Shown here: positions 9,737 to 61,801 of the stretch, piece by piece
Position numbering within the stretch: position 1 is the first letter of the stretch
How the letters are laid out: each line of letters begins with the position of its first letter
From: Macrostomum lignano
Taxonomy: Eukaryota
Assembly: GCA_002269645.1 (NCBI GenBank)
Contig: NIVC01003853.1
Location: 1-64,000, forward strand
Length of the DNA: 64,000 bases
Direction: 5' to 3'
The notes under the pieces: generated by a model
Databases searched by the model: none
The model's input: the letters and a program-made list of their open reading frames with translations, nothing else
Told to the model about the DNA's origin: nothing
Made by a program: the position numbers and the translations under genes

Positions 9737-9869
9737 GGTGCCCAGTTCCGATTCATACCGTATTTTCTGCTTAATTGTACGTATGTTGTTACGCTCGTAC
9801 TGTATGGGTTTATTTGCATGCTAGTGGGGTCAAGCTTCCTGGAGGAATGGCTCAGCGGCTTCTGCGGCG

Positions 9870-10125: not shown

Positions 10126-10371
10126 GTTTTCTGTGGCGCCAGCTTTGATGTAAAGCCTATTCCGTGCCCCGTGGTTGCTCTGACGAACTTGCGTGCAGAA
10201 AACCAGTACTTTTTTTTCATATTTCTTTTGCGGCAACCATTTTTCTTTTTCCCTTTTGCATTAGTTTGTCTCCAATTCTTTTGTTGTTTTTGATTATTTT
10301 TTTTGCTTTGTTATTTAAAAAAATTTGGTATCCCAGTCGCCGTGGTTCGAGCTCCGCCCTGTTTTTTTTGT

Positions 10372-10383
10372 AGGAGGGGAGGG
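10372..10383 (+). other. Polypurine tract of element 1
   Basis: aggaggggaggg immediately before TG. Confidence 0.75.
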
Positions 10384-18765: not shown

Positions 18766-19309
18766 ATTGAAAAAGAATAATTTAACAAAAGACAGACAAT
18801 CTGCTAGAGAATGGGAGAAAACTATTTCGTGGCAATCAGAAGTGTCAGAGCTCATACTCAAGTGCCGTAAAACATTCAAGCTGATTAAACAGTAGCAAAA
18901 GAAGATAAGAAACTTTTGATGTAAAGCAAATTGACAAACAAGCAGAACTACAGCTCATTATCGAGAGAAGCTGACATTGAACCTCATTAAAAGAAGAAGC
19001 TGTTAAGCACATTCGACAGACAAGACAAGTATCTTAGGCCGACACAGTTTACAGAAAAGTATAAGGCTGGAGACAGACAGTTGACAAAGAAGACCAGTGT
19101 ATAAAATCTACATTTTGACAAAGAAGGCAAAGAATTGCGCTGACAAAAACTCCAAACAAACAGAAGAGTTCGTTCACTCACTGAAATTGACTAACAGGCA
19201 GAGATCAATAGCAGAAGACAAATAAGCAGACCTCACTAAAAAAAGAAGTTAATGCGAGCTGACGAACAGAACAAGCTGATAAACAAGCAGAGATAATTTT
19301 CTGAAGATG

Positions 19310-35190: not shown

Positions 35191-38100
35191 AGGTTGAGTG
35201 AGTTTGGTGGCTGTGTTGGTGTCCTGAAAAAAACGTTTTAAAGTGTTGAAATTTACTTTTTCACGTTGGTTCCTTTGTATCTGAATATGAATGAAAACGG
35301 TGTTCTAACTACTATTAGTAATAGGAAACGTTAATGACAATTTGCAATTTAGGGAATATAGATAGAGAGTCATCTATTGTAAGTCGAAAGACTGCGCTGA
35401 ATATGACCGCAAGGCTGCACTCTCTTCTGTGAGCCACCTCCCTGCCTGTAGCTACGCAATTGGTGTCCCCAAAGAAATAAAGAAAGCCAAAAATTACAAC
35501 TGAATTAATATTTATTTTAATTGAAAAATTGAAATATCGGAATAAAACATTGTTATAATGATTGTTATACATAGTGTACATATTTCGAGCTATACATATT
35601 CAAATACAAATTTCCCAAAATTTCCCCGCAGCAGGAACGTCTAGTGCACACTGCAAAAATGTTGTTCAAGCGCAAATTTATTGTCTTGGATAGAGATGCA
35701 TTTTCGGGCAGAGAAAATCCTAACGAAATTAAAATGTCTAGAAACTGGTTAATAGCTCATAATAATATCAAGTTTTCGATAGGGATAACAATGAACTCAC
35801 GGTATTTAGACAAGGCAAGTTTTAAACACTTTGACAGTTCGATTGAAGCATAGTCAAGACATGTCAGACAGATTGCTCTATTCACACATTTTAAAATTAT
35901 CGTTGCAGCCTATCAGCTCATTGACTTTTCATTGCAGCAAAAACACACAACAGGCATGGACGCGGCCTGTTTTCAGTGCGGCATTCACAGTAAAATCAAA
36001 ATGTTAATGGTAACTTCATCATTTAGAGTTAGAGCAGTTTAGTGGGAATTGTTGTTCACGGAGTTGGTAGTCCGTGAAAGACATTCACGGAAGCGACAGT
36101 CTCGTGGGCATTGCGTTTAAAGGAATATTGACTCCATCGTTGTTGTTTTCAGTAGTAGATTTGGCAGGTCGTCTGCATTTTCTTACAAAATAAAAGACGG
36201 TCACAGCTACAAGTAAGAGTACAATGGCTCCCACCACAATCATAACAATTCTTGCGCTGCCATCCTGTTGATTCTCTGGGCAGGGTACTCGCTCGTCGCA
36301 GTTGGTTCCTTGCATCACTGGGTTGAACTCAACGACAAGCAGCCGATGCAGGCCCGCAGCTTCATCGCTACTGATTGGAACCAATTCCACTTTTTTATTG
36401 GAGTTCAGTCCAAGAGCAACTAATTGCATTTGCTGCTCATCCCCAGAAACGTTTCTGTCGGACGGTAGAGGTGAAGATAACGTGGAAAATCAGCCTCACG
36501 ATCCTGCCTAATCTCCCAACTCCTTCTAACAATACTCACCCCAAGAAATCGATCAACTCAGACTGGTTGGTCAAATATGTCCAGTTGCTTTTGTGCGTCA
36601 AGTTCCTGTTGCTGCAGTCGAGGTACAACAGCTTCGTGTCACAAACGGCCAAAAATGGCAGTAGTACTTGATGGTCTTTGACTCTGTGTAGCACTCTGGA
36701 TGCTGTGGGTGTTGGTTCGGGTAGTTTTGCAAAGTTTTTATCTAGCCTTCATGCAACAGAATTATTTCTATAAGTAGGGATCATACAAAATCCCGAGTTT
36801 CGCCAATCCTGATCCCTGCTGGTATGCAAGATTTGGAGTCAATCGGACAATTTAAAGTCATTTTTAGAGCGTGCTCTGTCTCGGCTATGAAATGAGGCTC
36901 ACTTTAAGCGAAATAAACTTTACTATGCTAAACAACTGAGAGTATAAATTTAAGTGTTTAGAATCGAGATTCGAGCCTTGAGAGTTGAGTTGAGACTTGA
37001 GACTCGAGTTGATAGTTGAGTCATTGACTGTTGACTCGTCGAGTCGAGTGTTGACTCAACCTCACGATGTGTAATAATCATACAAAGTTGTAAAGTTGTT
37101 TTGTAGCTGTAATCAAGCTTCGTAAAAGATCAAAATGCTTAATATTCGAATTCAAATCTAGCCGTTCGGGCAGTAGTGAATCGTGCACTGCATTTTGATT
37201 CTTGGAAAGGACAAGTTTTGGTGTCTTTACAAAATTATAGCAAAAGCAGCTACAGCCTTTTAGCAATACGAGTATTGTTCTTAAACATTTTTTAATCAAT
37301 CAGAAATGCGAAATTCTGACATTTTTGGATTCGAATGAGACAAATATCATTCACACAGACAATGGACTGCGTATTAAATATACAATACCAAGCAAAAATT
37401 AACAAGATATTACTAATTATTACTAATTAGTCATCACTGTCGGTATTGGAAGTTTTCGGGTATTGGATGGTAAATCCCGGACAATTGCAATCCCAGGATT
37501 AAGAATTTTTCGAAATCCAGGGTCATCATAATCTCGGAATTAAGAACAAGGATCACTGGGTGTTCCGTTGCATCAGGATGTAGCACTCATAAATATTGCA
37601 ATTTTGTTTGATGGTTCGCTTCTTCACGTGCATTTAGCTATGCTTTCCTTCAAAAAAGCATTCTCACTTTTTCTCCACACAAACTAAAAAATTGTTGTGT
37701 TTCTTATAATTAATCATATTTAACTAATTTATGTCATTCCATGCAAGAAATATTGCACAGATACCCATTCCTGACTCCTGAGGGTCGCAAACGAGCGCAT
37801 GTAAGCCTGTCGATCCCACATGCAGATATTGAGTCGTCGAACCTTGCGTAAGCTTCAAGGGATAAAATGTCAAAAAACCTGGCGAAAAATTATCAATATA
37901 AGTGCATCTGATTCAGAGATCTATGCATTTAAAGTTTAGCTGCAATGCAAACAAGCGAGCCTTCAAATAATTTTTCAATATCTGAACGTTGTACGTCCTG
38001 ATGAAACGATAACTACTATTGGTTCTTGATTCAGAATACCTGGATTTGGGCCTAATATTTTGATCCCGGGATCCCAGGATTGTATTGCCCAGTTGATGGG

Positions 38101-38664
38101 GCATTAATGCTTCGTAGACAAAATATATTTACTCACCGTTCTGTATAAACTCGCCAATTAGGTGTGCATCGCAATGCTGCAGCGGACAGCCACTCGAGAG
38201 CTGCAGGCCATGGCCCAAGGCCGAATCAGCAGGGACCGTCAAGTAGCATCTCCCGCCGTGCCTGAAGCTTGTGCTGGAGTTGCACGACTTCTGGCTCGTG
38301 ACAGAGACTGTCAGATTGTCGGATGCAGTCACATTTGTGACATTTGCCAGCTTGGCTGCGATGTTCACTGTGTCCCCACTGCAATGTAGGGTGTCAATTA
38401 TGCACTTCAAATCATTTTGACTGAACTCAACATTGCATAGCTGTTGCATAGCTGGTAGACGGTCAAAACTTTTCAAATCATGTCAATTTAGTCAAATCCA
38501 TCACACACGTCAACACAACTGAAGTACATGCAGTTTAAAACAAAGAAGTCCTTACGCATTCACAAAGATGTAGAGGCCAGAGCTGAGGTTCACTGAGTTG
38601 GCAAAGCCACTTCCTAAATTAAGAATGTAATCAGACCAGTTAGACAATAACACATTTAAGGTAT

Positions 38665-39487
38665 TGTTGTGAATTCGTAACTCAATGTATTTGCCCTTAC
38701 TGTAGTCTCTCTCTCTCTCTCTCCCTCTGCCAACCCTCCCCACCCCTTCCATGCTTGCAACTTGTTGTGAGTTATTTTCTTAGAGTACTTTATTTATTTT
38801 TTGGTGCCACTGCACTAGAACCAATCAATTGATGAACTATTATGGTAGTTGTTTATTTCATAGTTGTTCTTAGTTGTTTATTTCATAGTTGTTCTTAGTT
38901 GTTTATTTGTCCAGCCTATGTCTGCAACTTTCTTACCCCTGATTATTATTATCCCTCCCCCTCCGTGCTCTCTCATTGGCTGTCGCTGTTTTCTGTAATT
39001 CTGGTTTTCTACCCCCAGTCGCGTTTTGTGTGGCTGCAGCCAATCCCCGCTCGCTCTCTCTGCGCACCCCGCCTTTTCTCTTACCCTGCAGCTTTTGCCC
39101 CACCCCATGTTGTGCTGGCAGATATTTATTGGCGTGCGCTCCTGTCCTCTCCCCCCCCATGCGACCGCTTCTCCTCTGACTTCTTCGCCGCAAATAGTAT
39201 ATGACAATAAACCAAAAACAAGCGTGCCAACAATCGTGTTCAACCTAGACGCCCAGCGCGCCAAGTATCCGCGCCACAGTAAGTATCGTTCTGTTCCTGT
39301 CATTTCGGGGTCAAGTGCCTCTAGGACTTTGTCACCGGGGCCTGTGCGTTCGCTGCGACCCTGGTTGCTGGCCTACTGCCTGCGCGTTTGTGCGACAGTG
39401 GGTTGGCAAGCAGCAGGACTGGGGCTGCGTTTTCCTGCTCGTACAGAGCGCAAGACGTAGCTGGCTGGTCCGTCTCGGGACACAACA
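38665..39487 (+). repeat. 5' LTR (823 bp)
   Basis: Direct repeat of 46331-47169; ATTGGCTG, TATTTAT (39123), AATAAA (39206), GTAAGT (39279). Confidence 0.97.
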
Positions 39488-39488
39488 T

Positions 39489-39506
39489 TGGTGCCGTGAC
39501 CAGGAT
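39489..39506 (+). other. Primer-binding site, tRNA-His type
   Basis: TGGTGCCGTGACCAGGAT one base after the LTR, complementary to a tRNA-His 3' end (...GTCACGGCA-CCA). Confidence 0.85.
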
Positions 39507-39663
39507 AGGATTGTGCTTGAGGGTGTTTATGAGCTCGTGTTAGAATAGTTTAGATTAGTGCGGCTAGGGATCTGTTTGGAGGAGGGATTGCTTCCGATTT
39601 GTTAGTGTCGTTTTTACGTCGTTGTTTTTCTGTCGGTGTCGAGCATACGATTGCGCTGTCGTG

Positions 39664-40770
39664 ATGGGAGACGAAGGTGTGAATAGACTGGTGGAGTTAA
39701 TGTCCGCGTCAGTTCGTCGGGCGTTGCAGCAGGACATTAACGTGGCACAGAATGTACAGCGGCCAGCGAAGCCCCCGAAGTACTGCATTGGAGATAATTT
39801 CAGGCTATGGTTGCAGAGGTTCAATGCCTATTGTGAAGCATCGCAGATAGTGGAAGACGATCGCCGGCCTCATCTCCTCAGCTTCTTGGATCTAAATACG
39901 GCTTTCGCGGCAGTGGAGAATATTCAGCTGGAGGAGGGTGCCACGTATGATGATTTCACAGATGCACTCCTAGAAAGGTTCCAGCAGCACCGCACGGCCG
40001 AGGATTTCAAGCTGGAGCTGGAGTCGCGAGTCCAAAAAGAGGGCGAGACGTATGAGACTTATGCGGATGTGCTGTTAGAGTTAGCAAGGAACGCGTACCC
40101 AGATGAAGACATGCCAGTCGGAATCATCAACAGCTTTGCCAGAGACCGCTTCAAGAAGGGCATTCGAGCACCGGAACATGTCAAAGAGTACGTTATGCTG
40201 CAGCAACCCGCCACCCTTACGGATGCGGTTCGTTGCGTGCGACGTAAGGAGGCCGCCGGTCGAGCCGCCAAGCCGACAGGTTCAGAACAGGCTTACCGGA
40301 AAATTGCTTCGACCGTTGGTGCGGTGAATACCGGAGGCACCAGTTCAGACGGATTAGAAGAACTTCAACAGCGAATTCGAGACCTGGAAGGGCAGTTGAA
40401 GCGGCTGAATCAGGCACCGCCTCCTCAACAGTCTGCTGCACCCTCGTCTTCTGGGTCTGCGCATTCGCGCGGCCCGGGGCCTGGGTTGCAAGGTGGCAGA
40501 GGGGCCTGCGTGTATGGCGCGACCCCTAGTCATCTGGCAGGGCAGCAGCAGAGGCAGGCCGGTGCTTGCTTTCAGTGTGGAAACATCGGCCACCTAGCGC
40601 GCGAGTGCCCGAGTCGCTCCGGAATGATGCAGCAACCGCAGTCAAACCCAGCGGCGAGGACCGGCGGTCCGAGGCGTTGCTACGCGTGCAACCAGCCGGG
40701 TCATCTGGCCAAGAATTGTCGGTCGGGAAACTTCAACAGAGGTCCTGGGAAGGGGAGCCAGGGCCTCTAA
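39664..40770 (+). CDS. gag: Gag with two CCHC zinc knuckles
   Basis: CFQCGNIGHLAREC and CYACNQPGHLAKNC; first ATG at 39664. Confidence 0.93.
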   Translation: MGDEGVNRLVELMSASVRRALQQDINVAQNVQRPAKPPKYCIGDNFRLWLQRFNAYCEASQIVEDDRRPHLLSFLDLNTAFAAVENIQLEEGATYDDFTDALLERFQQHRTAEDFKLELESRVQKEGETYETYADVLLELARNAYPDEDMPVGIINSFARDRFKKGIRAPEHVKEYVMLQQPATLTDAVRCVRRKEAAGRAAKPTGSEQAYRKIASTVGAVNTGGTSSDGLEELQQRIRDLEGQLKRLNQAPPPQQSAAPSSSGSAHSRGPGPGLQGGRGACVYGATPSHLAGQQQRQAGACFQCGNIGHLARECPSRSGMMQQPQSNPAARTGGPRRCYACNQPGHLAKNCRSGNFNRGPGKGSQGL

Positions 40771-43700
40771 TCCAGTCAGCCAAACCTCCCCCGTCCAGTC
40801 AGCAGCCGGTCGACACACCAAGTCTGATGATGCAGCCCACCAGTGTGTACGTGTCCTGTCAAATCGGTGGTCAGGTGGTCTCTGCATGTGTCGACTCGGG
40901 CGCTGCTGTGACGATCATAAATGAAGCTTTGCTTCAGAGAGTGGGAAAGACTTGGACAAAATCGCCACCGAGTATTCAGCCTCATAAATCAACAATCCAT
41001 GCTGCCAACGGCAGCCCAATCAACATCAGTGCGATCTGCCAACTTCCGTTAACGATAGGCGAGAGCGAATTGAGTATGACAGCTCTAGTATCCTCGTCGG
41101 TTTCCTACGAGCTGTTAATGGGAGCCGACTTTCTGCTTAAGCACAACTGCCGCATCGATTTTCAAGATGGTGTACTTCACCTAGCAGATGCCAGCGTTCC
41201 GCTACGTTTTCACCAACGGCCTGCGACTGTGTGTCGCATTCTAGCGTCGGAGCGAATTGTGGTTCCGCCTGGAGCAGAGAAGATAGCATCTGGTCGATTC
41301 TTAATGAAGGGTGGAAGAGGACGATACACGAGAAGCCCAGGAGTAATTGAGGAAAGTCAAGACCGGAAGCGCGCAGGTTCCGCGGTGTTAGCGAGGTCCT
41401 TAGTGATGCCCACGGAAGACGCTCGAGTCCCCGTACGGCTGGCAAACTTCTCGGAGGTTCCTGTCACCATCCGCAAGGGCGAGACAGTTGCGTGGTACCA
41501 CCCGCTCGATCCGCTGCAGCCCATCGCGCTAGCAGCGTTGAGTGAAGCCAAGGATGCAGCTCCGACACTGGAAAAGCCTCGCCAAGAAGAGAGTGAGGCG
41601 GCCGAGGAGCTCCTAGCAGGTCTGAAGAATTGGGGAAGTTGTGGTTTGTCGGCAGAGCAAGAGGCGAAGTTCAAAGCGCTAATCCAGTGCAACAGAGACG
41701 TATTTGCAACCGAACTTGCCGAGGCCACGGTAACGAATGTCAGTGAGCACCGAATCGACACGGGGACGGCAAGACCTATCAAACAGGCTCCACGACGACT
41801 GCCGCCACATCTTAGAGCAGAAGTTGACGAGCAACTTGATGAGCTTCTGGCGCAAGGAAAAATCGAAGAGGCAATGTCCCCATGGAGCTCGCCAGTGGTC
41901 TGTGTGCGAAAGAAAGACAATTCGCTTCGAATGTGCGTGGACTATCGTCGGGTCAACGACGTGACCGTTAAGGACGCCATTCCGCTACCTCGCGTCGATG
42001 AAGCCCTAGAAGCGCTACATGGAACAGCCGTGTACAGTTCCCTAGATCTGCGATCTGGCTACCATCAAGTTCCGGTGGCTGCAGAAGACCGAGACAAGAC
42101 CGCATTTGCTGTGCCGCACCGCGGACAATTCCGATGGCTAGTGATGCCGTTTGGTGTCACCAACGGCCCAGCAACGTTCAGCCGCATCATGCAAACTGTG
42201 CTGCACCCATTGGCCTGGAAGATATGCCTCGTGTATCTGGACGACATTTTGGTTTTTTCCAACACCGTGGAAGATCATCTGGCCAGGTTGAGTGAAATTT
42301 TTCAGCGGCTGAGAAGTGCAAATCTAAAGCTGAATCCGAAGAAGTGCGAGCTGCTCAGTTCCGAAGTGAGCTTTCTGGGTCATCGAGTCTCGGCGGACGG
42401 CATCGGAACTGACCCAGAGAAGGTCCGAGCAATTCGCGAGTGGCCGACACCATGCACTGTCAAGGATGTGCAAGCGTTTCTCGGCACTGTTGGCTACTAC
42501 CGGCGTTTTATTCAAGATTTTTCGCACACAGCTGAACCGTTGACGGAACTGACGAGATCTACATCACCGTTCCAGTGGGGATCGGCCCAAGAAGAAGCCT
42601 TCCAGCGGCTGAAAGAGGCGCTGACCGGAGAACAGGTCATGGCGTACCCGAACTTCGCTCCAGATGCACCGCCGTTCATCCTGGATACAGATGGCAGTTC
42701 GTCAGTGGGAATCGGAGGCGTCCTATCTCAGCTGCAACCGGACGGGTCGGAGAAAGTCATTGCGTACGGATCACGCACCCTGTCATCTGCAGAGCGGAAT
42801 TACTGCACGACCCGCGTTGAGCTCCTCGCTGTAGTCACCTTTATTCGCCAATTCAAGTACTTTCTGCTCGGGAAGCACTTCATTCTTCGAACCGACCATA
42901 GCAGTCTGCGCTGGCTGCATTCATTCAAGAATGTTGAAGGTCAAGCTGCGAGATGGCTGGAGCAGCTAGCCTGCTTTGACTACACGATCATACATCGAGC
43001 AGGCCGGGACCATGGGAATGCCGACGGGTTATCACGTAGGCCGAGAAGCCACTTTGGAGCAACCACGTGCCCGTCCTGCAAGGAGCAGCCTGAGGTCGGT
43101 GCAGTAACATTCGAGTCGGGACTCCAACAACGCGTCCATGAAGCGCAGCTCAAGCATCCTGAACTACGTCCGCTAAGACAGGCAGTGCAGACAGGGCGAC
43201 TAGAGTCGCTTGGAACTGGGCACCCGGGACCAGGAACACCCTACTGGAAGGCGCTGATGGCCAGAAAAGATGAACTGTGCATGGTCAATGACCTGCTGTG
43301 CATCAGGACAGAGAAGAATTTCAAAGTTGTTCTGACGGCAGAAACGACGAATTTGGTCATCTCAGAATTACACAGTGGAGCCAGTGGAGCGCACAGCGGA
43401 TTTTTCAAGACGAAGAAAAAAGTGACCTCGCGATTTTGGTTTCCGGGCCTTGGCAGACTGGTAGAAGAGTTCATTCGATGCTGTGTAACCTGCGGAAAAT
43501 CAAAGACGAAGCAGCGAGGCCGAGCACCCCTCGAGCCGATTCAAACTGGTGCTCCATTTGAACGTGTCATGGTTGACATTGTCGGACCGCTTCCACGAAC
43601 AAGGAAAGGAAACATGTACGTCCTGACGATTCAAGATGCTTTCACCAAATGGCCGGATGCGTACCCGCTTCGAAACCAGAAGGCTGCAAGCTGTGCAAAG

Positions 43701-44648
43701 GTGTTTGTCGAACGCTGGATCAGTCAACACGGATGTCCGCAGTTCCTGCACTCGGATCAAGGCCGAAATTTCGAGTCAAGATTAACTACGGAACTGTGCT
43801 CGTTGCTAGGCATCAAGAAGACAAGAACGACACCGTACCACCCAATGGGGAACGGTCAAGTGGAAAGCTTTAATCGTACGCTCGGCACCAGCTTGAGAAG
43901 CCTGATGGTCGAAAATGGAGCAGCGCAGTCAAGTTGGGAAGAATTTATACCGGCGGTGCTAATGGCGTATCGGTCCAGTGTACATCGAGGAACCGGCTAC
44001 ACACCGCACTACCTGGTGTACGGTGAGGAGATGCGACTGCCTGTTGACCTGATGAACAAGCCGCCTCAAGTGCAGCCGAGTGAAACAACGGAATATGTTG
44101 CTGAACTACGTCGCAAGATGCAAGCAGCTGGCGACACCGTGCGGACCAACCTGTCGACGTATCAGAGACAGCAAAAGGATCAGTACGACACGGGAGCTCG
44201 TGGTTCGGGATTCAACGAAGGAGATCTGGTCTACGTGTATCAGCCTTGTCTGGAGACCGGCGAAGCAAAGAAGTTCCATGTGTACTGGACTGGACCGGTG
44301 AAAGTGTTCAAGCGAGAAAGTGCGACTCGATACAGGGTAGGGCACCCGACGAACAACCGGAAGAGGAAAACCGTGCACTTTAACAACTTGCACCTTTACC
44401 GTCGCGCTGAACGGAGCGAGCAAGATGGGCAACGTGTACCGGTCCCTGAGCAACGGGAATCCGATGAGCACAACGAGGAGGAGGATGATGATGAAGACGG
44501 CGAGAGTGATTGGGTGCAGCTGCCTCAACCCGAAGCAGTAGATTTCGGAGTCCCTGGCAGTCCGGGTAGGCCACCCACGCCAGAGCGTCGTTACCCGGTT
44601 AGAAACCGGGTCCCTACGCAGTTTTTTGGTAATCCCGTGCGTCACTGA
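40566..44648 (+). CDS. pol: Pol (protease, RT, RNase H, integrase), probably translated as Gag-Pol
   Basis: Protease VDSGA; RT YLDD; RNase H ILDTDGS; integrase HHCC and DIVGPLP / HSDQGRNFES; 1360-codon open frame. Confidence 0.97.
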   Translation: MLSVWKHRPPSARVPESLRNDAATAVKPSGEDRRSEALLRVQPAGSSGQELSVGKLQQRSWEGEPGPLIQSAKPPPSSQQPVDTPSLMMQPTSVYVSCQIGGQVVSACVDSGAAVTIINEALLQRVGKTWTKSPPSIQPHKSTIHAANGSPINISAICQLPLTIGESELSMTALVSSSVSYELLMGADFLLKHNCRIDFQDGVLHLADASVPLRFHQRPATVCRILASERIVVPPGAEKIASGRFLMKGGRGRYTRSPGVIEESQDRKRAGSAVLARSLVMPTEDARVPVRLANFSEVPVTIRKGETVAWYHPLDPLQPIALAALSEAKDAAPTLEKPRQEESEAAEELLAGLKNWGSCGLSAEQEAKFKALIQCNRDVFATELAEATVTNVSEHRIDTGTARPIKQAPRRLPPHLRAEVDEQLDELLAQGKIEEAMSPWSSPVVCVRKKDNSLRMCVDYRRVNDVTVKDAIPLPRVDEALEALHGTAVYSSLDLRSGYHQVPVAAEDRDKTAFAVPHRGQFRWLVMPFGVTNGPATFSRIMQTVLHPLAWKICLVYLDDILVFSNTVEDHLARLSEIFQRLRSANLKLNPKKCELLSSEVSFLGHRVSADGIGTDPEKVRAIREWPTPCTVKDVQAFLGTVGYYRRFIQDFSHTAEPLTELTRSTSPFQWGSAQEEAFQRLKEALTGEQVMAYPNFAPDAPPFILDTDGSSSVGIGGVLSQLQPDGSEKVIAYGSRTLSSAERNYCTTRVELLAVVTFIRQFKYFLLGKHFILRTDHSSLRWLHSFKNVEGQAARWLEQLACFDYTIIHRAGRDHGNADGLSRRPRSHFGATTCPSCKEQPEVGAVTFESGLQQRVHEAQLKHPELRPLRQAVQTGRLESLGTGHPGPGTPYWKALMARKDELCMVNDLLCIRTEKNFKVVLTAETTNLVISELHSGASGAHSGFFKTKKKVTSRFWFPGLGRLVEEFIRCCVTCGKSKTKQRGRAPLEPIQTGAPFERVMVDIVGPLPRTRKGNMYVLTIQDAFTKWPDAYPLRNQKAASCAKVFVERWISQHGCPQFLHSDQGRNFESRLTTELCSLLGIKKTRTTPYHPMGNGQVESFNRTLGTSLRSLMVENGAAQSSWEEFIPAVLMAYRSSVHRGTGYTPHYLVYGEEMRLPVDLMNKPPQVQPSETTEYVAELRRKMQAAGDTVRTNLSTYQRQQKDQYDTGARGSGFNEGDLVYVYQPCLETGEAKKFHVYWTGPVKVFKRESATRYRVGHPTNNRKRKTVHFNNLHLYRRAERSEQDGQRVPVPEQRESDEHNEEEDDDEDGESDWVQLPQPEAVDFGVPGSPGRPPTPERRYPVRNRVPTQFFGNPVRH
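40725..40767 (+). promoter_or_regulatory. -1 programmed ribosomal frameshift signal
   Basis: Slippery G GGA AAC in gag frame, 7-nt spacer, 10-bp stem GAGGTCCTGG / CCAGGGCCTC; pol is in the -1 frame. Confidence 0.85.
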
Positions 44649-44749
44649 CCAGTCATGGAGCGAACGCACAGGATGAAGGAGGCAGAAAAGTGCATGAATT
44701 TAAATAGTCGTCTACCTTCTAGCAAGTCAATTGCCGTTTCATTTTTAGT

Positions 44750-45601
44750 ATGTACTACGAAGTCCTGGGTGTCGCATCTGATGCGACCACGCAGCAGGTT
44801 AAGAAGGCTTACTACCAGCGCATACGTCACGCACATCCAGACAAGGTGGGGCCAGGCGCTCGGCGGCAGGCACAAGAAATAAATGAAGCGTATCAAGTAT
44901 TGAGTGATCCGTTTCTGCGAATCGTGTACGAACAGTTTGGTCCTGAGGGTGCGCAGGCGCCGAAAATGTTTCTGTCACGACTGAGACTGCCAGCTGGGAT
45001 GGCAATACCAACTGAGTACTTTGAGCAGGTGGAAATATCGTCAGAATCTGAGGATGACACCGAGGATGAGCAGGAAAGTCGACTGCAGTTGGTCGGGAAG
45101 CCGAGTGTGGGAAGCGAAGATGAGCCGGTGAATACAGCGGTCCGCAACAAATTGAAGCGCGCTTGTTTACGTGGGAACGCGTCGGAAATTGCGAGGTTGA
45201 TGGCGGAAATCCGGCAGTTATATTCGGCGCGTCAGGCGGTAGCTGAGGTCAAGAGAGCGTTACTGAATGGGTTAAAGGATCTAGCGACGAAAAAGATTGG
45301 CCGCTCGAAGATTGTCATGAGCGTTGACGAGTACAAATCGACATCAAGAGCGGTGCGGGAAGCTGCTCAGTCGCTAGAGTTCCGCTGTGTAGGAGTGTTA
45401 GTAGCGTCAGTGCGTCGCTTTAGGCCCTTCCTGGTCAATAAGGTTTTTAGGCGGGCACCAATGGCACCCGGGACGGGGGAACCCAGCCGTTCCAGCCCTG
45501 CTGCGGACGCGGATGTCCTGGTGCTGGACGCCGAGGAAGAGGACCTGGATGACCTGGGCGAGGAAGCGACGAGCGGCGGCATGAACTCGTTGAAACTGTG
45601 A
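44750..45601 (+). CDS. Retrotransposon ORF3: J-domain protein with acidic segments and helical C-terminal domain, 283 aa
   Basis: MYYEVLGVASDAT..QVKKAY...HAHPDKV...QEINEAYQVLSDP.LR.VYEQFG; homologous to 8789-9736 beyond the J-domain. Confidence 0.93.
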   Translation: MYYEVLGVASDATTQQVKKAYYQRIRHAHPDKVGPGARRQAQEINEAYQVLSDPFLRIVYEQFGPEGAQAPKMFLSRLRLPAGMAIPTEYFEQVEISSESEDDTEDEQESRLQLVGKPSVGSEDEPVNTAVRNKLKRACLRGNASEIARLMAEIRQLYSARQAVAEVKRALLNGLKDLATKKIGRSKIVMSVDEYKSTSRAVREAAQSLEFRCVGVLVASVRRFRPFLVNKVFRRAPMAPGTGEPSRSSPAADADVLVLDAEEEDLDDLGEEATSGGMNSLKL

Positions 45602-46317
45602 ACGTCGAACGACGGATCGTGGCGACAGAATGTTAAGGACCCGGGCCCGGGTTCAGCCTTAGCAACTGCCGCGGAGGCGATGCAAGCGTTCATCGAAAAG
45701 TCTTGTCGCGAGTGACCTACAATGTACCTGCCCTACACCTGACCTACAGCGCGCCAGCCCCACACCTGACCTACCGCACACCAGCCCTACATTTGACCGC
45801 CTAAGCTGAGTGCACCTGAGTTTTGAAAGTCAGTTTAGACTACTGTAAAATTTTCGAAGATTGCTTATTCCTTGCGCTGTTGTTGATTCTCAGGAGTTTC
45901 AATTTCAATTTTGTTGCTGGTTTTGAGATCGTGCTGCAAGCCTGGCTGCGTCTGAGATGCCTTAATTGCTGGCGTGATGCTAATTCTTAATAATTGTTTT
46001 TTGCATAACCAAGTTAATACAACGTTAATTGTCATCTTTTTGCCCTGTTGGCCAATTTTCTGTTCAATGCTCAATGTTCATGTTCCGTATTCCATGCCAA
46101 CGTTGAATTTTCCATGTTGTGTTCTCCCTTTCACCCTTTCATTTTTTGCGTCATCCATCACTCTTCATGCCATTGCCAGCCGGCTCGCTCTCAATCACTG
46201 GTGAAGGGAATTTTTTTGCTCATCTCGCTCATCGCATGCAAAGGCCCCGCTGATACTTGTACAAGCCGAATTGTCTCAAATACCGTACCGTACAAACATT
46301 TTTTGTGTGACTTCGTC

Positions 46318-46330
46318 AAGAAGGGGAGAA
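46318..46330 (+). other. Polypurine tract of element 2
   Basis: aagaaggggagaa abutting the TG of the 3' LTR. Confidence 0.9.
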
Positions 46331-47169
46331 TGTTGTGAATTCGTAACTCAATGTATTTGCCCTTACTGTAGTCTCTCTCTCTTTCTCTCTCCCTCTGCCA
46401 ACCCTCCCCACCCCTTCCATGCTTGCAACTTGTTGTGAGTTATTTTCTTAGAGTACTTTATTTATTTTTTGGTGCCACTGCACTAGAACCAATCAATTGA
46501 TGAACTATTATGGTAGTTGTTTATTTCATAGTTGTTCTTAGTTGTTTATTTCATAGTTGTTCTTAGTTGTTTATTTGTCCAGCCTATGTCTGCAACTTTC
46601 TTACCCCTGATTATTATTATCCCTCCCCCTCCGTGCTCTCTCATTGGCTGTCGCTGTTTTCTGTAATTCTGGTTTTCTACCCCCAGTCGCGTTTTGTGTG
46701 GCTGCAGCCAATCCCCGCTCGCTCTCTCTGCGCACCCCGCCTTTTCTCTTACCCTGCAGCTTTTGCCCCACCCCATGTTGTGCTGGCAGATATTTATTGG
46801 CGTGCGCTCCTGTCCTCTCCCCCCCCCATGCGACCGCTTCTCCTCTGACTTCTTCGCCGCAAATAGTATATGACAATAAACCAAAAACAAGCGTGCCAAC
46901 AATCGTGTTCAACCTAGACGCCCAGCGCGCCAAGTATGCGCGCCAAGTATCCGCGCCACAGTAAGTATCGTTCTGTTCCTGTCATTTCGGGGTCAAGTGC
47001 CTCTAGGACTTTGTCACCGGGGCCTGTGCGTTCGCTGCGACCCTGGTTGCTGGCCTACTGCCTGCGCGTTTGTGCGACAGTGGGTTGGCAAGCAGCAGGA
47101 CTGGGGCTGCGTTTTCCTGCTCGTACAGAGCGCAAGACGTAGCTGGCTGGTCCGTCTCGGGACACAACA
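46331..47169 (+). repeat. 3' LTR (839 bp)
   Basis: Near-identical to the 5' LTR. Confidence 0.97.
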
Positions 47170-47929
47170 GTATCAAAAATCTATGCGAATAATTAAGCGA
47201 ACATGCTCACCACTTAAGTGCGATACACCCAGCCAGAGTCCTTGTCTTGGCTCGGGAGGTTGGAGTTGGAGAACGCTGTTATTCTCGACCACATTGATCT
47301 TCCACCGACAAACCACATTTGTTATCACGGTGGTCTCGCTAGCAAACCGTTCGTGGAAATATAAAGTTAAACTCCTTCCTCCCTCGACATCAAATTTGTG
47401 CCAAAGCTGTTCTCGACAGTGCGCCACTTCAGCCGTTGCGACTCTGAAATTCGATGAAAAAATGGCTAATTGTACGTGTCTGACTGATTAAAACAGAAAA
47501 ATCTGACAAAAAGGCAGAGAATCTGCTACAGAATGGGAGAAAATATTTCGTGGCGATCAGAAGTGTCAGAGCTTATACTCATGTGCGGTAAATTATTAAA
47601 TTAAATTAAAAATTAGCAAAAAAGATAAGATAAGAGACTTTTGATGCCAAGCTAATTGACAGACAAGCAGAGTTTCATCAAAAGAGGCTGATACTAAACG
47701 TCATTAAAAGACCAAGCTCTTAGATCCATTTGACACACAAGACAAATATCTGAGACAAAACAGTTTACAATGAAGTGTAAGAGACTCAGTTGACATACAG
47801 ACAGTTGACAGAGAAGAACAATGTTCTCGATGATCTGGATTTTTAGCAGGGAAGGCAAAGAATTATGTAGAAAAAAATGCAAGCAGACAAAAGCTTGACA
47901 GCCCGGTTGTGAACAAGTCGAAGCAAGAG

Positions 47930-49340
47930 ATCACTAACAAAAAAAGCTGGCGAAACAAGCAGAGCTCTCTAACAGAAGAAACTGGCAAACAAGCAGAGCT
48001 CTCTAACAGAAGAAACTGGCAAAACAAGCAGAGCTCTCTAACAGAAGAAGCTGGCAAACAAGCAGAGCTCACTAACAGAAAAAGCAGGCAAACAAGCAGA
48101 GCTCACTAACAGAAGAAGCTGGCAAAACAAGCAGAGCTCACTAACAGAAGAAGCTGGCAAAACAAGCAGAGCTCTCTAACAGAAGAAACTGGCAAAACAA
48201 GCAGAGCTCACCAACAGAAAAAGCTGGCAAAACAAGCAGAGCTCTCTAACAGAAGAAACTGGCAAAACAAGCAGAGCTCACTAACAGAAGAAGCTGGCAA
48301 AACAAGCAGAGCTCTCTAACAGAAGAAACTGGCAAAACAAGCAGAGATCACCAACAGAAAAAGCTGGCAAAACAAGCAGAGCTCTCTAACAGAAGAAACT
48401 GGCAAAACAAGCAGAGCTCTCTAACAGAGGAAGCTGGCAAACAAGCAGAGCTCACTAACAGAAAAAGCAGGCAAACAAGCAGAGCTCACTAACAGAAAAA
48501 GCTGGCAAAACAAGCAGAGCTCACTAACAGAAAAAGCTGGCAAAACAAGCAGAGCTCACTAACAGAAAATGCTGGCAAAACAAGCAGAGCTCACTAACAG
48601 AAAAAGCTGGCAAAACAAGCAGAGCTCTCTAACAGAAGAAACTGGCAAACAAGCAGAGCTCACTAACAGAAGAAGCTGGCAAAACAAGCAGAGCTCACTA
48701 ACAGAAGAAGCTGGCAAAACAAGCAGAGCTCACTAACAGAAGAAGCTGGCAAAACAAGCAGAGCTCACTAACAGAAGAAGCTGGCAAAACAAGCAGAGCT
48801 CACTAACAGAAGAAGCTGGCAAAACAAGCAGAGCTCACTAACAGAAGAAGCTGGCAAAACAAGCAGAGCTCACTAACAGAAGAAGCTGGCAAAACAAGCA
48901 GAGCTCACTAACAGAAGAAGCTGGCAAAACAAGCAGAGCTCACTAACAGAAGAAACTGGCAAAACAAGCAGAGCTCTCTAACAGAGGAAGCTGGCAAAAC
49001 AAGCAGAGCTCACTAACAGAAGAAACTGGCAAAACAAGCAGAGCTCTCTAACAGAAGAAACTGGCAAAACAAGCAGAGCTCTCTAACAGAGGAAGCTGGC
49101 AAAACAAGCAGAGCTCACTAACAGAAAAAGCTGGCAAAACAAGCAGAGCTCTCTAACAGAAAAAGCTGGCAAAACAAGCAGAGCTCACTAACAGAAGAAG
49201 CTGGCAAACAAGCAGAGCTCACTAACAGAAAAAGCAGGCAAACAAGCAGAGCTCTCTAACATAAGAAGCTGGCAAACAAGCAGAGCTCACTAACAGAAAA
49301 AGCAGGCAAACAAGCAGAGATCTCTAACAGAAGAAACTGG
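47930..49340. repeat. 34-35-bp minisatellite, about 40 copies, paralog of 19310-21255
   Basis: Unit aagcagagctcactaacagaagaagctggcaaaac. Confidence 0.95.
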
Positions 49341-50789
49341 CAAACAAGCAGAGCTCATAAGCAAAGATGATGACAACCAAGGATTGGGAATTCATTGGTA
49401 AAACAGAAAAGTAGTCAGTCTGGATGTACAGAATGACAGATGTACAAACTTACGGGTACTGCAGATAAAATACTATGAAAGAAATTAAAATGTGCCAATT
49501 CATTTCAGCCTTAAATATTTTTTCAATTTTGTATTGCAAATCAGAGCCGGTTATTTCGGTTCTCGCATCAACATGGAACCAAAAGTTTTAGCAATCGTTT
49601 GAACAATGTAAAAATATTGCTATTTTATTAAGTTGAAACTAAAGTGTTCAATTATAAGAATTCCAGTTGTTACAACTATGGAGTTTTAATTTTCCTTTGG
49701 CGGTGATTATTTCTCTAATTGAAATTTGTTAATTTTCGCGGTTTCGTCATAGCTATATTAAAACAAAAATGTTTTGAATGTAACTAAACTCTAGATTTCG
49801 CTCCGCTAGTCACTATTGCAATAAGTAGTGTGATTAGCGTAAGTAGTTATGGATTTTCGGTAAGTTTAGAAATACTTTTTTTGCGCTTACTAGGATTATT
49901 GAAGCGTTGAGAAATCGGAAAAAAGCTGTGTAATTTTCTCTGTGAAGAATTTAAATAAGCGAAAAATTACCATCGAATTCAGCCAGATTTTCAAGTTATT
50001 CGTTGAAACTTCGTTGACTCCATGACGGCACTTTTGACCTGGCTGCGATCGTCAGTAGTATCGAGAGCAAATCTTTTTTCGAATACCATAGGAAGCGTCT
50101 CAGCAATGAAAGAATTGGGACGATGACTCAAGACAGGATGAAAAATACAAAAGCTCTTGCTTGGGATCCAAAAAAGTAAGCTAAATAGCAAGCAGCAGCC
50201 AGCAGTTTACAGTACCCAGCCTTGCATACCAATACATTAATCATTGATTCAGGTTCAGCCGTGGACTAGCCGCGGATCTCCCTCGCAGTAGGCAACACAT
50301 AACTATGCAGATAATAAGGGGGCTGAAGTAGAAACAACAGCCAACAGCACTGACAAAATGGACCTTTACGCTTGTAGTACAATGAGAATTCAGTTTTACT
50401 AACCCAGTGGTATGCCCATGCTGCGCACAATGTAGTTTTAGACTGTACAATAGCTATCTTGTCAAAAAACGCATTGCTATTTTGGTGGATAGCCACTTAT
50501 AGAGCTGGTCATAATTCTCTGTCCCATTTGGTCCTATCCACGGGAGGACCAGGCGTTAAGCGCATTTAGGAGCGCAATTGCCTCACTTTGCCACTTCTAT
50601 CGAAACAGCGCAGAAACTATTTTAACTGCCATGCGGTGTCTGCACTCGTAAAATCTGCTCTGGCCTATTCTGGGTGCCCATGCAATAATTCCGTCGGGTG
50701 ATGTTGAGGGCTGGAAATGCAAAAATAACAATAAGCGCAGGGCCGAAAACGCAGCGCGCAAACAATTATTCATCCAAAGTAGCCTAAGA

Positions 50790-52216: not shown

Positions 52217-54992
52217 ATGCTCCTGAACATGCTGCTGCTGCTGGCTTGAGGACGGCGGAGCAAAGCAGAAAATCTGAAGAAAAAAAATTGAAATTAGCAA
52301 AGGAAAGCACTGGAAAGCATTCACCGTCAGATCCACCCGCCTATACCATATGTGCCACTTTTTCTACCAGAAACACAGGTACACCATCAGCTGAATTGCC
52401 TACCACAAATCTAAATTGCCTACGACAAAGCTAAATTGCCTACCACAAAGCTAAATTGCCTACCACAAATCTACATTGCCTACCACAAAGCTAAATTGCC
52501 TACCACAAATCTACATTGCCTACCACAAATCTACATTGCCTACCACAAATCTACATTGCCTACCACAAATCTACATTGCCTACCACAAATCTACATTGCC
52601 TACCAAAAAGCTACATTGCCTACCACAAAGCTACATTGCCTACCACAAATCTACATTGCCTACCACAAATCTACATTGCCTACCACAAATCTACATTGCC
52701 TACCTCAAATCTACATTGCCTACCACAAATCTACATTGCCTACCACAAAGCTACATTGACTACCACAAATCTACATTGCCTACCACAAAGCTACATTGAC
52801 TACCACAAAGCTACATTGCCTACCACAAAGCTGCAGCTTCAAAGACTTTCCAACTTAAACTCTCACCCTGTCCTTCTGGTCGATCTGCGTGTCCGGTTCC
52901 GGGAAGGTCATCACAAACCATCCGCTGGTGGTGTCTGAAGATTTGTCCTTTTTCTTCACGGCACGCCTGCGGTAGACGCCCAGACACATGATCTCGAACC
53001 TGTCCAGGCAGCTGATAACCAGGTCCTCCCACTTCATCTCCTGCAAACCGGAAGTGATTCTAGCTACCCTATACGGTAAACCGGAAGTGATTCAAGCTAC
53101 CCTATACTGCAACCCGGAAGTGATTCAAGCCACTCTATACTGCTACCGGAAGTGATTCAAGCCACCCTATACTGCAACCCGGAAGTGATTCAAGCCACTC
53201 TATACTGCTACCGGAAGTGATTCAAGCTACCCTATACTGCAAACCGGAAGTGATTCAAGTTACCCTATACGGTAAACCGGAAGCTGGCTCATAAACTGGC
53301 CGCTATCACAGCCACCCTCAGTAGCCAGCAACTAAACGGCAAACCTTGCAGTCGAACAGCTGGAAGATGTCCTTCAGCGGGAAGTCGGTCGACTTCAGCA
53401 GCATCAGGCGGAAGCCGTAGACGCGGCTGTGCTCCGTCAGGTCCCCGCGGCTCAGGCAGCTGGGGATGCAGAAGTCCAGGCTGAGGTAGTCGTCCACGCT
53501 GGGCTGGTTGGAGCCGTGGATGATGGACTCCAGGAAGGCCAGGGACTCCGGGCAGAAGTACACGGACGCCAGCAGGCCCGTCAGGTTTGGCGACGACACG
53601 ACAAGTCCTTCGGCGAATGACTGCGTGTCCATCACGTCGGCCGCGGAGATGTCCGTCAGGCGCTCGGTCGGGTCGGAGAAGCAGTACGCGTTGGGCGAGT
53701 AGTACAGCTCCGAGGTCACGTGACAGTCCTTGGCGCCGATGCCGCGCAGGTTCTCGGTGCACAGCAGGGTCATCTTGTCGGCCAAGAAGGGGTCGCAGGA
53801 GGAAGACCGCTCGGCGAGGTTGATGACGGTCATGGCGGCGGCCTGGTGGGCGCGGCAGTACAGCAGGTGCTGCGGGAAGATGCCGTTGCCGTCAACCACG
53901 TAGATGAAGGGGAAGTTGCGGATGCCGCGCCACTCGTGCTGCTCGATGGACTCGGCGTCGCCGAGGATGACGATGTCGCTAAGCTGCTCGGCGGGGATGG
54001 AGCAGTTGCGGAGCGGCAGCACCAGCGAGGACATGCCGATCGGGTGCTTCAGGGAGCCGATGATGGCCACCAGGGTGTGGCCCCGGAACTCGATTTCCTT
54101 GGCCTCGTCGACGCTGAGCTTCCGGCAGCGCCGATTCGGCGCCCAGTGCAGTGTGCCGGTGATGTCCAGCAGCGGCGGCACCTCGTGCTCGGCGGCGTGC
54201 AGCTCGCGCTTCGTGCTGCAGCGGGCGTCGACGCTGTCGCGGAACCAGTTCTCCAGGCGGTGCTCCTCCTCGTGACCGGTGATGGCGGAGGCTCGGCGAA
54301 CTGTCTGCTGCTGAAGCTGGCCTTGGAACCTGAGCAGCGGCACGTCCGACCAGTCTGTAGGGAGGGGGGGGGTTGCGGAGAGCGGCTGGTGCGTCTCGAT
54401 GACTTCTTCAGTATTGTCCTCTGAATATTGTCCTCTAGCCTATCATGGGTGCAGGAATAGAATGGATTGCTAATCTAGCCTATCATGGGTGCAGGAATAG
54501 AATGGATTGCTAATCTAGCCTATCATGGGTGCAGGAATAGAATGGATTGCTAATCTAGCCTATCATGGGTGCAGGAATAGAATGGATTGCTAATCTAGCC
54601 TATCATGGGTGCAGGAATAGAATGGATTGCTAGTCCAGCTCGTGAATGAAGGAGCAGATTGAGGAGCTCGACTGTCTCCGTAGCAACTCACCCACATCGC
54701 CCGTGAGGTCAAAGCCAACTCCTGCAGTGACGGATTCGTCGCCGGTGTGGCTGGTGCTGCGGGGTCAGTGAGTGCAAGGGGCGGTGGGTATTCAGCATGG
54801 GGTGGAAAAATGGGCGAGAACAGCAGCAGCTGCTGGCTGCCCGCCCACTCACTCCGTGTCTTCCAGCTCCGCCCTGTACGACAGCTCCGGGTCGGGAATT
54901 GTGCTCTGGTCATCGGTGAGGGTGTCCAGCACCGCCACGAAGTCTTCTTTGAGACCTCCGCCGCTGCTGCCGCCTCCTCCTGCACCGCCGCC

Positions 54993-55057
<65 letters not shown>

Positions 55058-60615: not shown

Positions 60616-61150
60616 TTGTTATGTCCTCTTCTTCTGCTTCTATACCGACTATTGCCTCCAGGCTACCATCTGACATCAAAGTCAAGTCGAAGAAGCATTA
60701 TTTAAAATACGAGCTGTTCACAAGCTTTATTTGCCTCTAGCCGGCGCACGTCTTGCTTGCCCTTTGTAATACTGTTAGCCTTCTGAAAAACCTACGCCCT
60801 AAAATTTTCCCCAGAAAGGAGATTTCCCGTCCTTCTACTTTGAGTAGCCCTTGCTTAGAGCATGCTCACTTTCCAATAGATGAATAGGAAGCATTGAACC
60901 AATAAGGAAGGCGGGCAAGGGACTCATGTTACAAATGTACTTTCCGGAGCTGTCATGTATATAAATAAAGTTTCATTTTATAGTACGCAAAAGCGGCACT
61001 ATCCGCATATATACATGGCGTTTTTGTGTGCAACATTGCCACGGATTTCCCGCGGAAATTCCGTCTATTTTTAACATAAAGCTCTGCGCGCTGCAAAGCA
61101 AAGCAAAACTTCTACTGCATCAGACCCAGTTTTTTAGATTCGCCTTTAAA

Positions 61151-61801
61151 ATGCCGGAAATCTACCAGCGCTGGAACGGGTCCAGGGACAAAGGAAACCT
61201 GGAATTTTGGCGAAGCGAGGAGTTCCGCAACGAATACGCAAGATTTGAGATGGTCAAGAAGAAAGAAATCGTGTACAGCCTCATCAGGAAGAAGATGCAT
61301 GCCGCCATCATGTCCTCTGACAGGACCAGCTACCGGGTGCTGTCGCTGGGCTGCGGTCCCGGCTCCGACTTGCTGGCGGCCATGCAGGTCTCCCAGTCCG
61401 TGTGCCTCATGGAGGAATTGGAGCCCCTGACCGTCAAGGTCACGGGAGTTGACCGCTATGAGTGGTCGCTGGACAGCTTCAGCGCTAAGACAGACGCCAT
61501 CGAAAGGCGGGGACCGATCGAGAACTTCCGAGATAAATTTTACTTCTGCAGCATGCAGCGGTATTTTGAATTCGCTCGCAGAAGTGGAAAGCGATTCGAC
61601 TTCATCATTTTGAGCTTCGCTGAAGTGAAGAAGAAGCTGGAATTCGTCTCCAACCGCCTGCCTGAGCTGCTCCGAGATGAAGCCAGCAGGATCTTCGTGA
61701 TCGACAACAACATCGAGCCCGTGAGACAGCTGAAACGCTGCGGATTCGAACAGATTGGAACTTTGGCCGGAAAGACAATCTGTTTGATGGGCCAGCAGTG
61801 A
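61151..61801 (+). CDS. Single-exon class I SAM-dependent methyltransferase-like protein, 216 aa
   Basis: First ATG at 61151; YRVLSLGCGPGSDL, VTGVD, FDFIILSF, IFVIDN; paralog of 25992-27516; GC-rich codon usage. Confidence 0.75.
   Translation: MPEIYQRWNGSRDKGNLEFWRSEEFRNEYARFEMVKKKEIVYSLIRKKMHAAIMSSDRTSYRVLSLGCGPGSDLLAAMQVSQSVCLMEELEPLTVKVTGVDRYEWSLDSFSAKTDAIERRGPIENFRDKFYFCSMQRYFEFARRSGKRFDFIILSFAEVKKKLEFVSNRLPELLRDEASRIFVIDNNIEPVRQLKRCGFEQIGTLAGKTICLMGQQ

Follow-up and report, generated by a model that had tools for sequence, protein, structure and literature searches.

A J-domain protein gene between pol and the 3' long terminal repeat in two Ty3/mdg4 retrotransposon families of Macrostomum lignano

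Introduction

Polyomavirus large and small T antigens carry an HPD J-domain at the extreme N-terminus and a parasite-specific remainder that directs Hsc70, and phage class-C J-proteins (Rki, RB43-like phages) are small proteins with a J-domain and a tail without recognisable domains, Rki hijacking the host Hsp70; both are described in a 2026 review of J-domain proteins (PMC13254874). The same review counts 49 unique phage J-proteins, 48 of which consist of a J-domain and a tail without any known domain (PMC13254874). Here we describe a gene of this build in long terminal repeat (LTR) retrotransposons of Macrostomum lignano. It is the third open reading frame (ORF3), at positions 44750-45601, of an element of the Ty3/mdg4 (Gypsy) group, referred to as element 2. 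A diverged, 5'-truncated relative, element 1, carries its own ORF3 at 8789-9736. Both lie in a 64,000-nucleotide stretch of contig NIVC01003853.1 (assembly GCA_002269645.1, positions 1 to 64,000 of the forward strand), which was analysed at its full length and is called the window below.

The T antigens belong to DNA viruses and have helicase, origin-binding and Rb-binding functions, which are absent from ORF3. Their sequence relation to ORF3 is only that of a generic J-domain, and none of the 49 PDB J-domain matches obtained with ORF3 is a T antigen. Rki, unlike ORF3, works in a prokaryotic host on DnaK, and an effect on a heat-shock regulator such as it exerts is only a rival reading for ORF3. 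In position, ORF3 resembles the third gene of errantivirus-type Ty3/mdg4 elements. That gene too is read in the direction of pol and lies between it and the polypurine tract (PPT), and a sub-genomic mRNA made by splicing serves for its expression. It is env, whereas ORF3 encodes a cytosolic-type J-domain protein without a signal peptide or transmembrane segment. Cellular class-C J-proteins likewise have the J-domain as their sole recognisable domain, but ORF3 is borne by a retrotransposon and its C-terminal region matches no cellular protein among 1.84 billion representatives. DnaJ-X proteins (PF14308; Caj1/Djp1-like) provide the best J-domain matches of element 2, yet the X-domain was not detected in ORF3. 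The pestivirus cINS/Jiv insertion, a fragment of host DNAJC14 in a viral genome, comes from a host J-protein gene. What is active in the captured fragment is a part other than the J-domain, which serves the protease as a cofactor, and the insertion arises by sporadic recombination and is not a lineage-wide gene; the analogy to ORF3 is a loose one.

In its section on parasites that hijack Hsp70, the 2026 review names phages, polyomaviruses and a herpesvirus mimic, and no transposon (PMC13254874). An earlier note on this DNA, made from the sequence alone, was aware of no described Gypsy lineage with a J-domain ORF. We likewise found no description of a retrotransposon-encoded J-domain protein in the searchable literature (a scope that leaves Repbase, Dfam and GyDB outside), including a 2025 census of the LTR retrotransposons of M. 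lignano (PMC12801592). The census annotates canonical domains only (PMC12801592), and families bearing ORF3 may already be catalogued without the gene having been noticed.

ORF3 encodes a class-C J-domain protein

Both ORF3s are uninterrupted on the forward strand, as the earlier note had read them. That of element 2 (44750-45601) encodes 283 amino acids (aa) and that of element 1 (8789-9736) encodes 315 aa. The Pfam DnaJ profile (PF00226), whose curated gathering cut-off is 27.8 bits, matches the former with 63.3 bits (E 2.3e-17, profile positions 2-62 of 63) and the latter with 65.3 bits (E 5.5e-18, positions 1-63 of 63). These matches lie far beyond chance and confirm that ORF3 is not a chance ORF. 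The J-domain occupies residues 2-60 in element 2 (44753-44929), with HPD at residues 29-31, and residues 2-64 in element 1 (8792-8980). With its neighbouring residues, the motif of element 2 reads HAHPDK and that of element 1 reads FWHPDK, and the N-terminal HPD J-domain that had been claimed for both proteins is thus borne out by full-profile matches as well as by the motif. In both, the domain begins at residue 2-3, that is, the ATG sits at the domain start. When the PDB was searched with the element 2 ORF3 sequence, 49 J-domain chains were retrieved at E <= 0.001, the best of them human Hsp40/DNAJB1 J-domains (E 1e-12). The matches are confined to approximately residues 2-70, except for two DNAJB1-kinase fusion chains that reach residue 95.

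No other Pfam domain was found in either ORF3, even at E <= 10, and this includes DnaJ_C and the zinc-finger-like DnaJ_CXXCXGXG. The sequence following the J-domain is not G/F-rich. By exclusion, both proteins are class-C (type III) rather than class A or class B J-domain proteins, in the sense in which the review defines the class (PMC13254874). Envelope-like features were not found. The N-terminus is J-domain helix I, no transmembrane segment was detected in either protein (maximum 19-residue Kyte-Doolittle means of 1.08 and 1.33), and neither gave an env-like Pfam match. This agrees with the earlier observation that ORF3 has neither a signal peptide nor a transmembrane segment and is not env.

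In database searches, the J-domain of element 2 was matched best by proteins of the DnaJ-X type (three proteins, P0001-P0003, 39-51% identity), and the best matches of the element 1 J-domain include the J+RRM type among others. A BLAST alignment extending to residue 131 prompted the idea that the whole of ORF3 derives from a DnaJ-X (Caj1-like) gene. This was rejected, as Pfam finds no X-domain and hhalign against P0001-P0003 aligned the J-domain only (columns 2-75).

ORF3 lies within a recent, structurally complete element

Element 2 spans 38665-47169 (8,505 bp) on the forward strand in the order LTR, primer-binding site, gag, pol, ORF3, PPT, LTR, as delimited by LTR self-BLAST and by flanks that align to an element-free paralogue. 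The 5' LTR (38665-39487, 823 bp) aligns to the 3' LTR (46331-47169, 839 bp) with 0 mismatches and 3 indels, 16 bp in all. The termini of the element are TGTTGTG...CACAACA, and it is flanked by a 4-bp target-site duplication, GTAT (38661-38664 and 47170-47173). A candidate primer-binding site beginning with TGG (39489-39506) lies one base past the 5' LTR. The gag gene runs from the ATG at 39664 (39664-40770, within an ORF at 39622-40770) and encodes two CCHC zinc knuckles (Pfam zf-CCHC), together with a weak PNMA-like capsid match. The pol ORF (40566-44648) comprises 1,360 codons without a stop in the -1 frame, overlapping the end of gag, and its Pfam domain order is protease (PR), reverse transcriptase (RT), RNase H (RH) and integrase (IN), with H2C2, rve and p58_C. 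It is followed by a spacer of 101 nt (44649-44749) and by ORF3. A further 716 nt without a long ORF separate ORF3 from the PPT (AAGAAGGGGAGAA, 46318-46330), which adjoins the 3' LTR.

Element 2 thus shows the hallmarks of Ty3/mdg4 elements, namely direct TG...CA LTRs, a target-site duplication, a primer-binding site, a PPT, the order PR-RT-RH-IN and a CCHC gag. The Gmr1-type domain order, with integrase before reverse transcriptase, is absent from it. The LTR retrotransposons of M. lignano are mostly Mag and Gmr1/Osvaldo (PMC12801592). Element 2 is a structurally complete, very recent insertion.

The site without the insertion is also preserved in the window. In an older segmental duplication, a paralogous site carries a single GTAT (18434-18437); 17831-18437 aligns to 38073-38664 at 89% identity and 18434-20681 aligns to 47170-49381 at 80%. 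As element 2 is present in one duplicate copy only, the other serves as an internal empty-site control. ORF3 is unambiguously part of element 2. The duplication as a whole (14678-20681 versus 36278-49381, 80-89% identity) is old, and each side of it contains a 34/35-nt satellite array paralogous to the other (19265-21255 and 47921-49357).

The linkage of pol and ORF3 recurs at other loci

We performed an exhaustive HMMER search of a library of 1.84 billion representative proteins, in which the M. lignano proteome is included, with residues 70-283 of the element 2 ORF3 as the query. Two sequences matched, both of them transposon-derived models from M. lignano, and no annotated host protein did. 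The C-terminal region of the element 2 ORF3 is an orphan. The first match, P0014, is the GenBank entry 'hypothetical protein BOX15_Mlig034239g2', located at NIVC01000506.1 (10001-12979 of the retrieved locus L001). It is a rearranged copy of the element 2 family, with one internal deletion that removes the integrase region and the first ORF3 codons and one 3' truncation by a satellite array. About 260 residues of its ORF3 are 98-99% identical to that of element 2, and a search with the element 2 Pol returned a 99%-identical GenBank protein of M. lignano. The second, P0138 (UniProt A0A1I8G7E4, 'J domain-containing protein'), is a chimeric model with two ORF3 J-domains and pieces of Pol. Both keep HPD and the C-terminal region of ORF3 together with Pol sequence, so the pol-ORF3 linkage recurs elsewhere.

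Word-indexed protein searches with both ORF3s returned generic J-domain proteins only. Such a search missed P0014 despite near identity, and its silence is weak evidence. Neither the two ORF3s nor P0138 had a record when looked up by exact sequence. Transposon fragments listed as 'J domain-containing' or 'hypothetical' in the M. lignano databases would inflate counts of host J-proteins.

UniProt and GenBank list these related sequences as ordinary host proteins, as would be the case if ORF3 were not part of the element and were instead a host gene or exon lying between the LTRs, or an assembly artefact. However, ORF3 lies within the bounds set by the target-site duplication and the empty paralogous site, its linkage to pol recurs in a different scaffold (NIVC01000506.1) and in a second family, and the database models are themselves fusions of Pol and ORF3. 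The empty site and the recurring linkage contradict this explanation, whose probability we regard as close to nil.

A 5'-truncated relative carries ORF3 in the same position

Searching the window with the Gag and Pol of element 2 (tblastn) revealed a pol remnant at 5492-8374 on the forward strand. It comprises reverse transcriptase, RNase H and integrase by Pfam, its similarity to the element 2 Pol starting at 5492, which corresponds to Pol residue 411. The remaining pol contains no stops and no frameshifts, and its product shares 53% identity with the element 2 Pol over 954 aa. A gag gene, a protease and a 5' LTR were not detectable in the window by tblastn with the element 2 Gag and Pol or by self-BLAST, and element 1 is thus a copy broken once, by 5' truncation. 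A spacer of 414 nt (8375-8788) separates its pol from ORF3 (8789-9736). Downstream of ORF3 lie a GC-rich 20-nt tandem repeat (9868-10122) and a PPT (AGGAGGGGAGGG, 10372-10383), followed from 10384 by a TG-initiated sequence (TGTAGTG) that was taken as the start of the 3' LTR. Self-BLAST found no partner for this LTR in the window. The tandem repeat, with about 12.6 copies and 77% matches, makes long spurious ORFs on both strands.

In both elements, a third ORF on the same strand therefore has pol upstream and a purine tract followed by TG downstream, and the earlier assignment of both to Gypsy, with ORF3 in the env position, holds. Two corrections to that description concern element 1. It is a 5'-truncated copy, and its spacer measures 414 nt, whereas that of element 2 is short (101 nt).

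Similarity of the two ORF3 proteins extends past the J-domain

BLAST aligned the two ORF3 proteins over the first 105 residues only, at 31% identity and with a score of 42 bits. Compared with the 53% identity of the Pol proteins, the ORF3s are the more diverged, as had been suspected. The regions following the J-domain were aligned by Smith-Waterman and gave a score of 60, compared with 35.3 +/- 5.7 for composition-preserving shuffles, of which 6 out of 2000 reached 60. The short segment containing P-x-G-[VM]-x-[MI]-P, taken alone, was matched by 22 of 2000 shuffles, and by 20 of 1000 in a narrower earlier test.

AlphaFold models of both proteins have a low mean pLDDT (53 for element 2 and 51 for element 1), with essentially no alignment depth. 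They agree on the J-domain helices, on disorder in the acidic tract and on a C-terminal region that is helical throughout. The acidic, predicted-disordered tract of element 2 covers approximately residues 96-125 (45035-45124), as seen in the charge profile, with pLDDT below 50 and no secondary structure. The basic C-terminal region, of net positive charge, covers approximately residues 125-232 (45122-45445), with predicted helices at 125-141, 144-157 and 160-179 and pLDDT of about 72-80 over residues 131-170. In each model, confidence is highest for the first three helices of the C-terminal region. Those of element 2 align in the same register with residues 200-215, 218-234 and 240-257 of element 1. 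Both proteins have the same charge layout, which is basic in the J-domain, strongly acidic in the tract after it and basic again in the C-terminal region. Similarity past the J-domain, proposed in the earlier note, is therefore weak but collinear, and the helices in register in the two models are in agreement with it.

The J-domains themselves give a different picture. Each of them scores higher against the cellular protein P0001 (75 bits for element 2 and 52 bits for element 1) than the two score against each other (42 bits), and the best matches differ in kind, being of DnaJ-X type for element 2 and J+RRM among others for element 1. Two different host J-domain genes could have been captured independently, at the same position of related families, with the function proposed below. 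Because they are closer to cellular J-domains than to each other, the J-domains alone are no proof of a single capture. However, such a pattern of bit scores would be expected of fast-evolving copies of a highly conserved domain, since each such paralogue should resemble the family average more than it resembles the other. That ORF3 descends as a whole from one ancestor appears to be the better reading and a single origin likely, because the similarity past the J-domain is collinear with its helices in register, the position, orientation and placement of the ATG at the J-domain start are identical, and the acidic-then-basic layout is the same. The same acceptor-like sequence also precedes the ATG in both elements. 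We consider two independent captures to be quite improbable. Regarding the claim of one ancestral capture, the arrangement common to two diverged families speaks for it, while the J-domains, each closer to cellular ones, do not.

The nearest relatives outside Macrostomum have no J-domain

The four nearest Pol relatives outside Macrostomum (41-51% identity, ENA loci) were probed with 19 J-domain proteins, and no J-domain was found in them. In the two of these loci with definable LTRs, the 3' LTR begins about 50-120 nt after pol, which leaves no room for a third ORF. The nearest Pol relatives, at 4795-10577 of locus L002 and 4637-10343 of locus L003 (43% identity), are elements of about 5.7-5.8 kb with LTRs of 126-176 bp and gag and pol only; by contrast, element 2 measures 8.5 kb and has LTRs of about 830 bp. 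By parsimony, ORF3 and approximately 1.7 kb of 3' sequence would have been added in the Macrostomum lineage. A metagenome scan with an alignment of the integrase region found no relative, and a scan with ORF3 returned four J-domain genes of generic type, none of them near a Pol. The earlier note had spoken of a Gypsy clade. This can be kept for two M. lignano families, but it amounts to a handful of copies in one species, whose nearest outside Pol relatives are J-less.

Open reading frames point indirectly to selection on ORF3

The window copy of ORF3 and the copy at NIVC01000506.1 differ by 4 synonymous and 4 non-synonymous changes, giving a pN/pS of 0.32, which with only 8 differences is not significantly below 1. 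The same comparison gave 8 synonymous and 4 non-synonymous changes for gag (0.16) and 4 synonymous and 8 non-synonymous changes for the shared part of pol (0.65), both of them small counts.

These counts leave room for a neutral passenger, a fragment of host DNAJ mRNA that was transduced into an ancestral element and has stayed open through youth, without a role in the life cycle. LTR retroelements do acquire host sequences, and the copies, with their substitution-free LTRs, are so young that openness within one family proves little. What such a passenger does not explain well is the presence of an uninterrupted ORF of about 300 codons in both families despite 53% Pol identity, each with a full-profile J-domain that keeps HPD and starts at the ATG, and with one and the same architecture downstream. 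The chance that a random frame of about 300 codons is open is approximately 1e-6, as estimated from 61/64 sense codons. In addition, none of the annotated host proteins of M. lignano in the searched library matches the C-terminal region. At such a divergence of Pol, neutral drift would not allow frames of this length, the full J-domain and HPD to be kept, and we therefore judge a mere passenger to be improbable. Selection on ORF3 is inferred by this indirect argument from open frames, which is stronger than the copy-to-copy counts. The claim that ORF3 is kept under selection thus has the intact ORFs and canonical J-domains of both lineages as its basis, and pN/pS does not add to it.

ORF3 may be expressed from a sub-genomic mRNA

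Spliced-leader trans-splicing affects 38.8% of M. lignano genes, polycistronic precursors make up about 7% of the transcription units, and the GenBank gene models of this species were built from RNA-seq transcripts (PMC5730564). The P0014 model indicates that the element 2 family is transcribed. In both elements, a pyrimidine tract and AG directly precede the start of ORF3 (tttcatttttag, followed by tATG, in element 2 and gttgctttgcag, followed by ATG, in element 1). The sequences abutting the two ATGs are candidate 3' splice or trans-splice acceptors. Together with the trans-splicing and polycistrons of M. lignano, they make a sub-genomic ORF3 mRNA, produced by cis- or trans-splicing, plausible.

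The element 1 spacer contains four direct copies of AATGCRTCATT at 8449-8553, spaced by 35, 35 and 24 nt, against a chance expectation of 0.08. Read as its reverse complement, this motif contains TGACGCAT, which resembles a bZIP (ATF/CREB-type) half-site. No copy occurs in the element 2 spacer. The copies may form an internal regulatory module for the element 1 ORF3.

A proposed adaptor between host Hsp70 and the element

Retroelements depend on host chaperones for the folding, assembly and disassembly of their particles but, as far as we could find, are not known to code for a chaperone adaptor of their own. As set out in the 2026 review, an HPD J-domain binds ATP-bound Hsp70 at the interface of the nucleotide-binding domain and the linker and triggers hydrolysis, which clamps Hsp70 onto whatever the remainder of the J-protein brings near (PMC13254874). 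We propose, with about even confidence, that a Macrostomum lineage of Ty3/mdg4 elements has in ORF3 an accessory gene whose product is an adaptor directing host Hsc70 to an element-specific client, likeliest the Gag/Pol particle or its nucleic acid. ORF3 would have been gained once, in the common ancestor of both families, after the split from compact two-ORF relatives. It would be made from a sub-genomic mRNA through cis-splicing or spliced-leader trans-splicing at the pyrimidine tract and AG. The HPD J-domain would dock on cytosolic Hsp70/Hsc70 of the host and trigger ATP hydrolysis, a stimulation of the Hsp70 ATPase that is predicted from the sequence of ORF3. The element-specific C-terminal region would pick the site of Hsp70 action, most likely on the Gag/Pol particle that the element itself encodes or on its nucleic acid, and Hsp70 would be delivered to particle assembly, maturation or uncoating. 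Polyomavirus T antigens and phage J-proteins guide Hsp70 or DnaK to targets of the virus's choice in a comparable manner.

Several points weigh against this adaptor. ORF3 as a separate protein is predicted from sequence alone, and no more than two short sequences underlie the reading as splice acceptors. The C-terminal region is tied to Gag/Pol no more than to a host target. The AlphaFold models are of low confidence, and Foldseek searches of the PDB with both gave nothing below E 0.4. ORF3 is seen in one species and a handful of copies, its J-domains match a cellular protein better than each other, and its pN/pS is not significantly below 1. Nevertheless, the neutral passenger, the two independent captures and a gene foreign to the element all fit less well than the proposed adaptor.

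Nothing else in the element resembles the C-terminal region, and this would also suit an effector directed at the host. In that case, the J-domain would engage or titrate Hsp70, thereby releasing the heat-shock transcription factor or disturbing the Hsp70/Hsp90-dependent loading of PIWI/Argonaute, and silencing would be blunted. The review describes a J-domain with an orphan tail as the make-up of most phage J-proteins, and Rki as acting on the host heat-shock regulator sigma-32 (PMC13254874). Several clades of M. lignano LTR retrotransposons exploit heat shock through LTR-borne heat-shock elements (HSEs), and for retrotransposons of these clades the induction by heat exceeds 250-fold (PMC12801592). 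As they ride the heat-shock response, a heat-shock-like state pays off for retroelements in this host. However, the LTRs of element 2 have no canonical HSE. Scanning the window for nGAAnnTTCnnGAAn gave two matches only, both outside element 2 and at chance level, and a heat-shock link via HSEs in the LTRs was rejected. Any link to HSF1 or to PIWI loading is hypothetical, and the expression of ORF3 is predicted here as it is for the adaptor. We therefore consider a host-directed effector unlikely. Its more specific form, a retrotransposon J-protein that switches on a heat-shock-like state or blocks PIWI loading in germline or stem cells as a eukaryotic counterpart of phage Rki, would be a long shot.

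If ORF3 is a working accessory gene, as the adaptor proposal holds, the hijacking of Hsp70 in the style of viruses extends to LTR retrotransposons. It would then form a new class among the acquired third genes of LTR elements, alongside env, extra RNase H and chromodomains. With a J-domain and a targeting region of about 150 residues, ORF3 would offer a compact natural handle for asking at which step the retroelement cycle is limited by chaperones. The presence of the gene suggests an element that supplies an adaptor of its own to the chaperone machinery of the host.

Other features of the window

An Rfam scan of the window found no RNA family. Exons of a host gene for a Slo-like potassium channel lie at 53318-58257 on the reverse strand, with a Slo-like RCK domain (E 2e-14) and a pore containing GFGD (E 6e-10). 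The ORF of the pore exon continues into a translated 13-nt satellite. Two paralogous intronless ORFs, at 26539-27516 (reverse strand) and 61028-61801 (forward strand), encode the SAM-methyltransferase motif VLSLGCGPGS and match Pfam Methyltransf_23 (E 5e-7 and 8e-4). Satellites are very dense, with more than 20 distinct tandem arrays of units of 4-45 nt, and this density fits the tandem-repeat content of the M. lignano genome, reportedly 15%.

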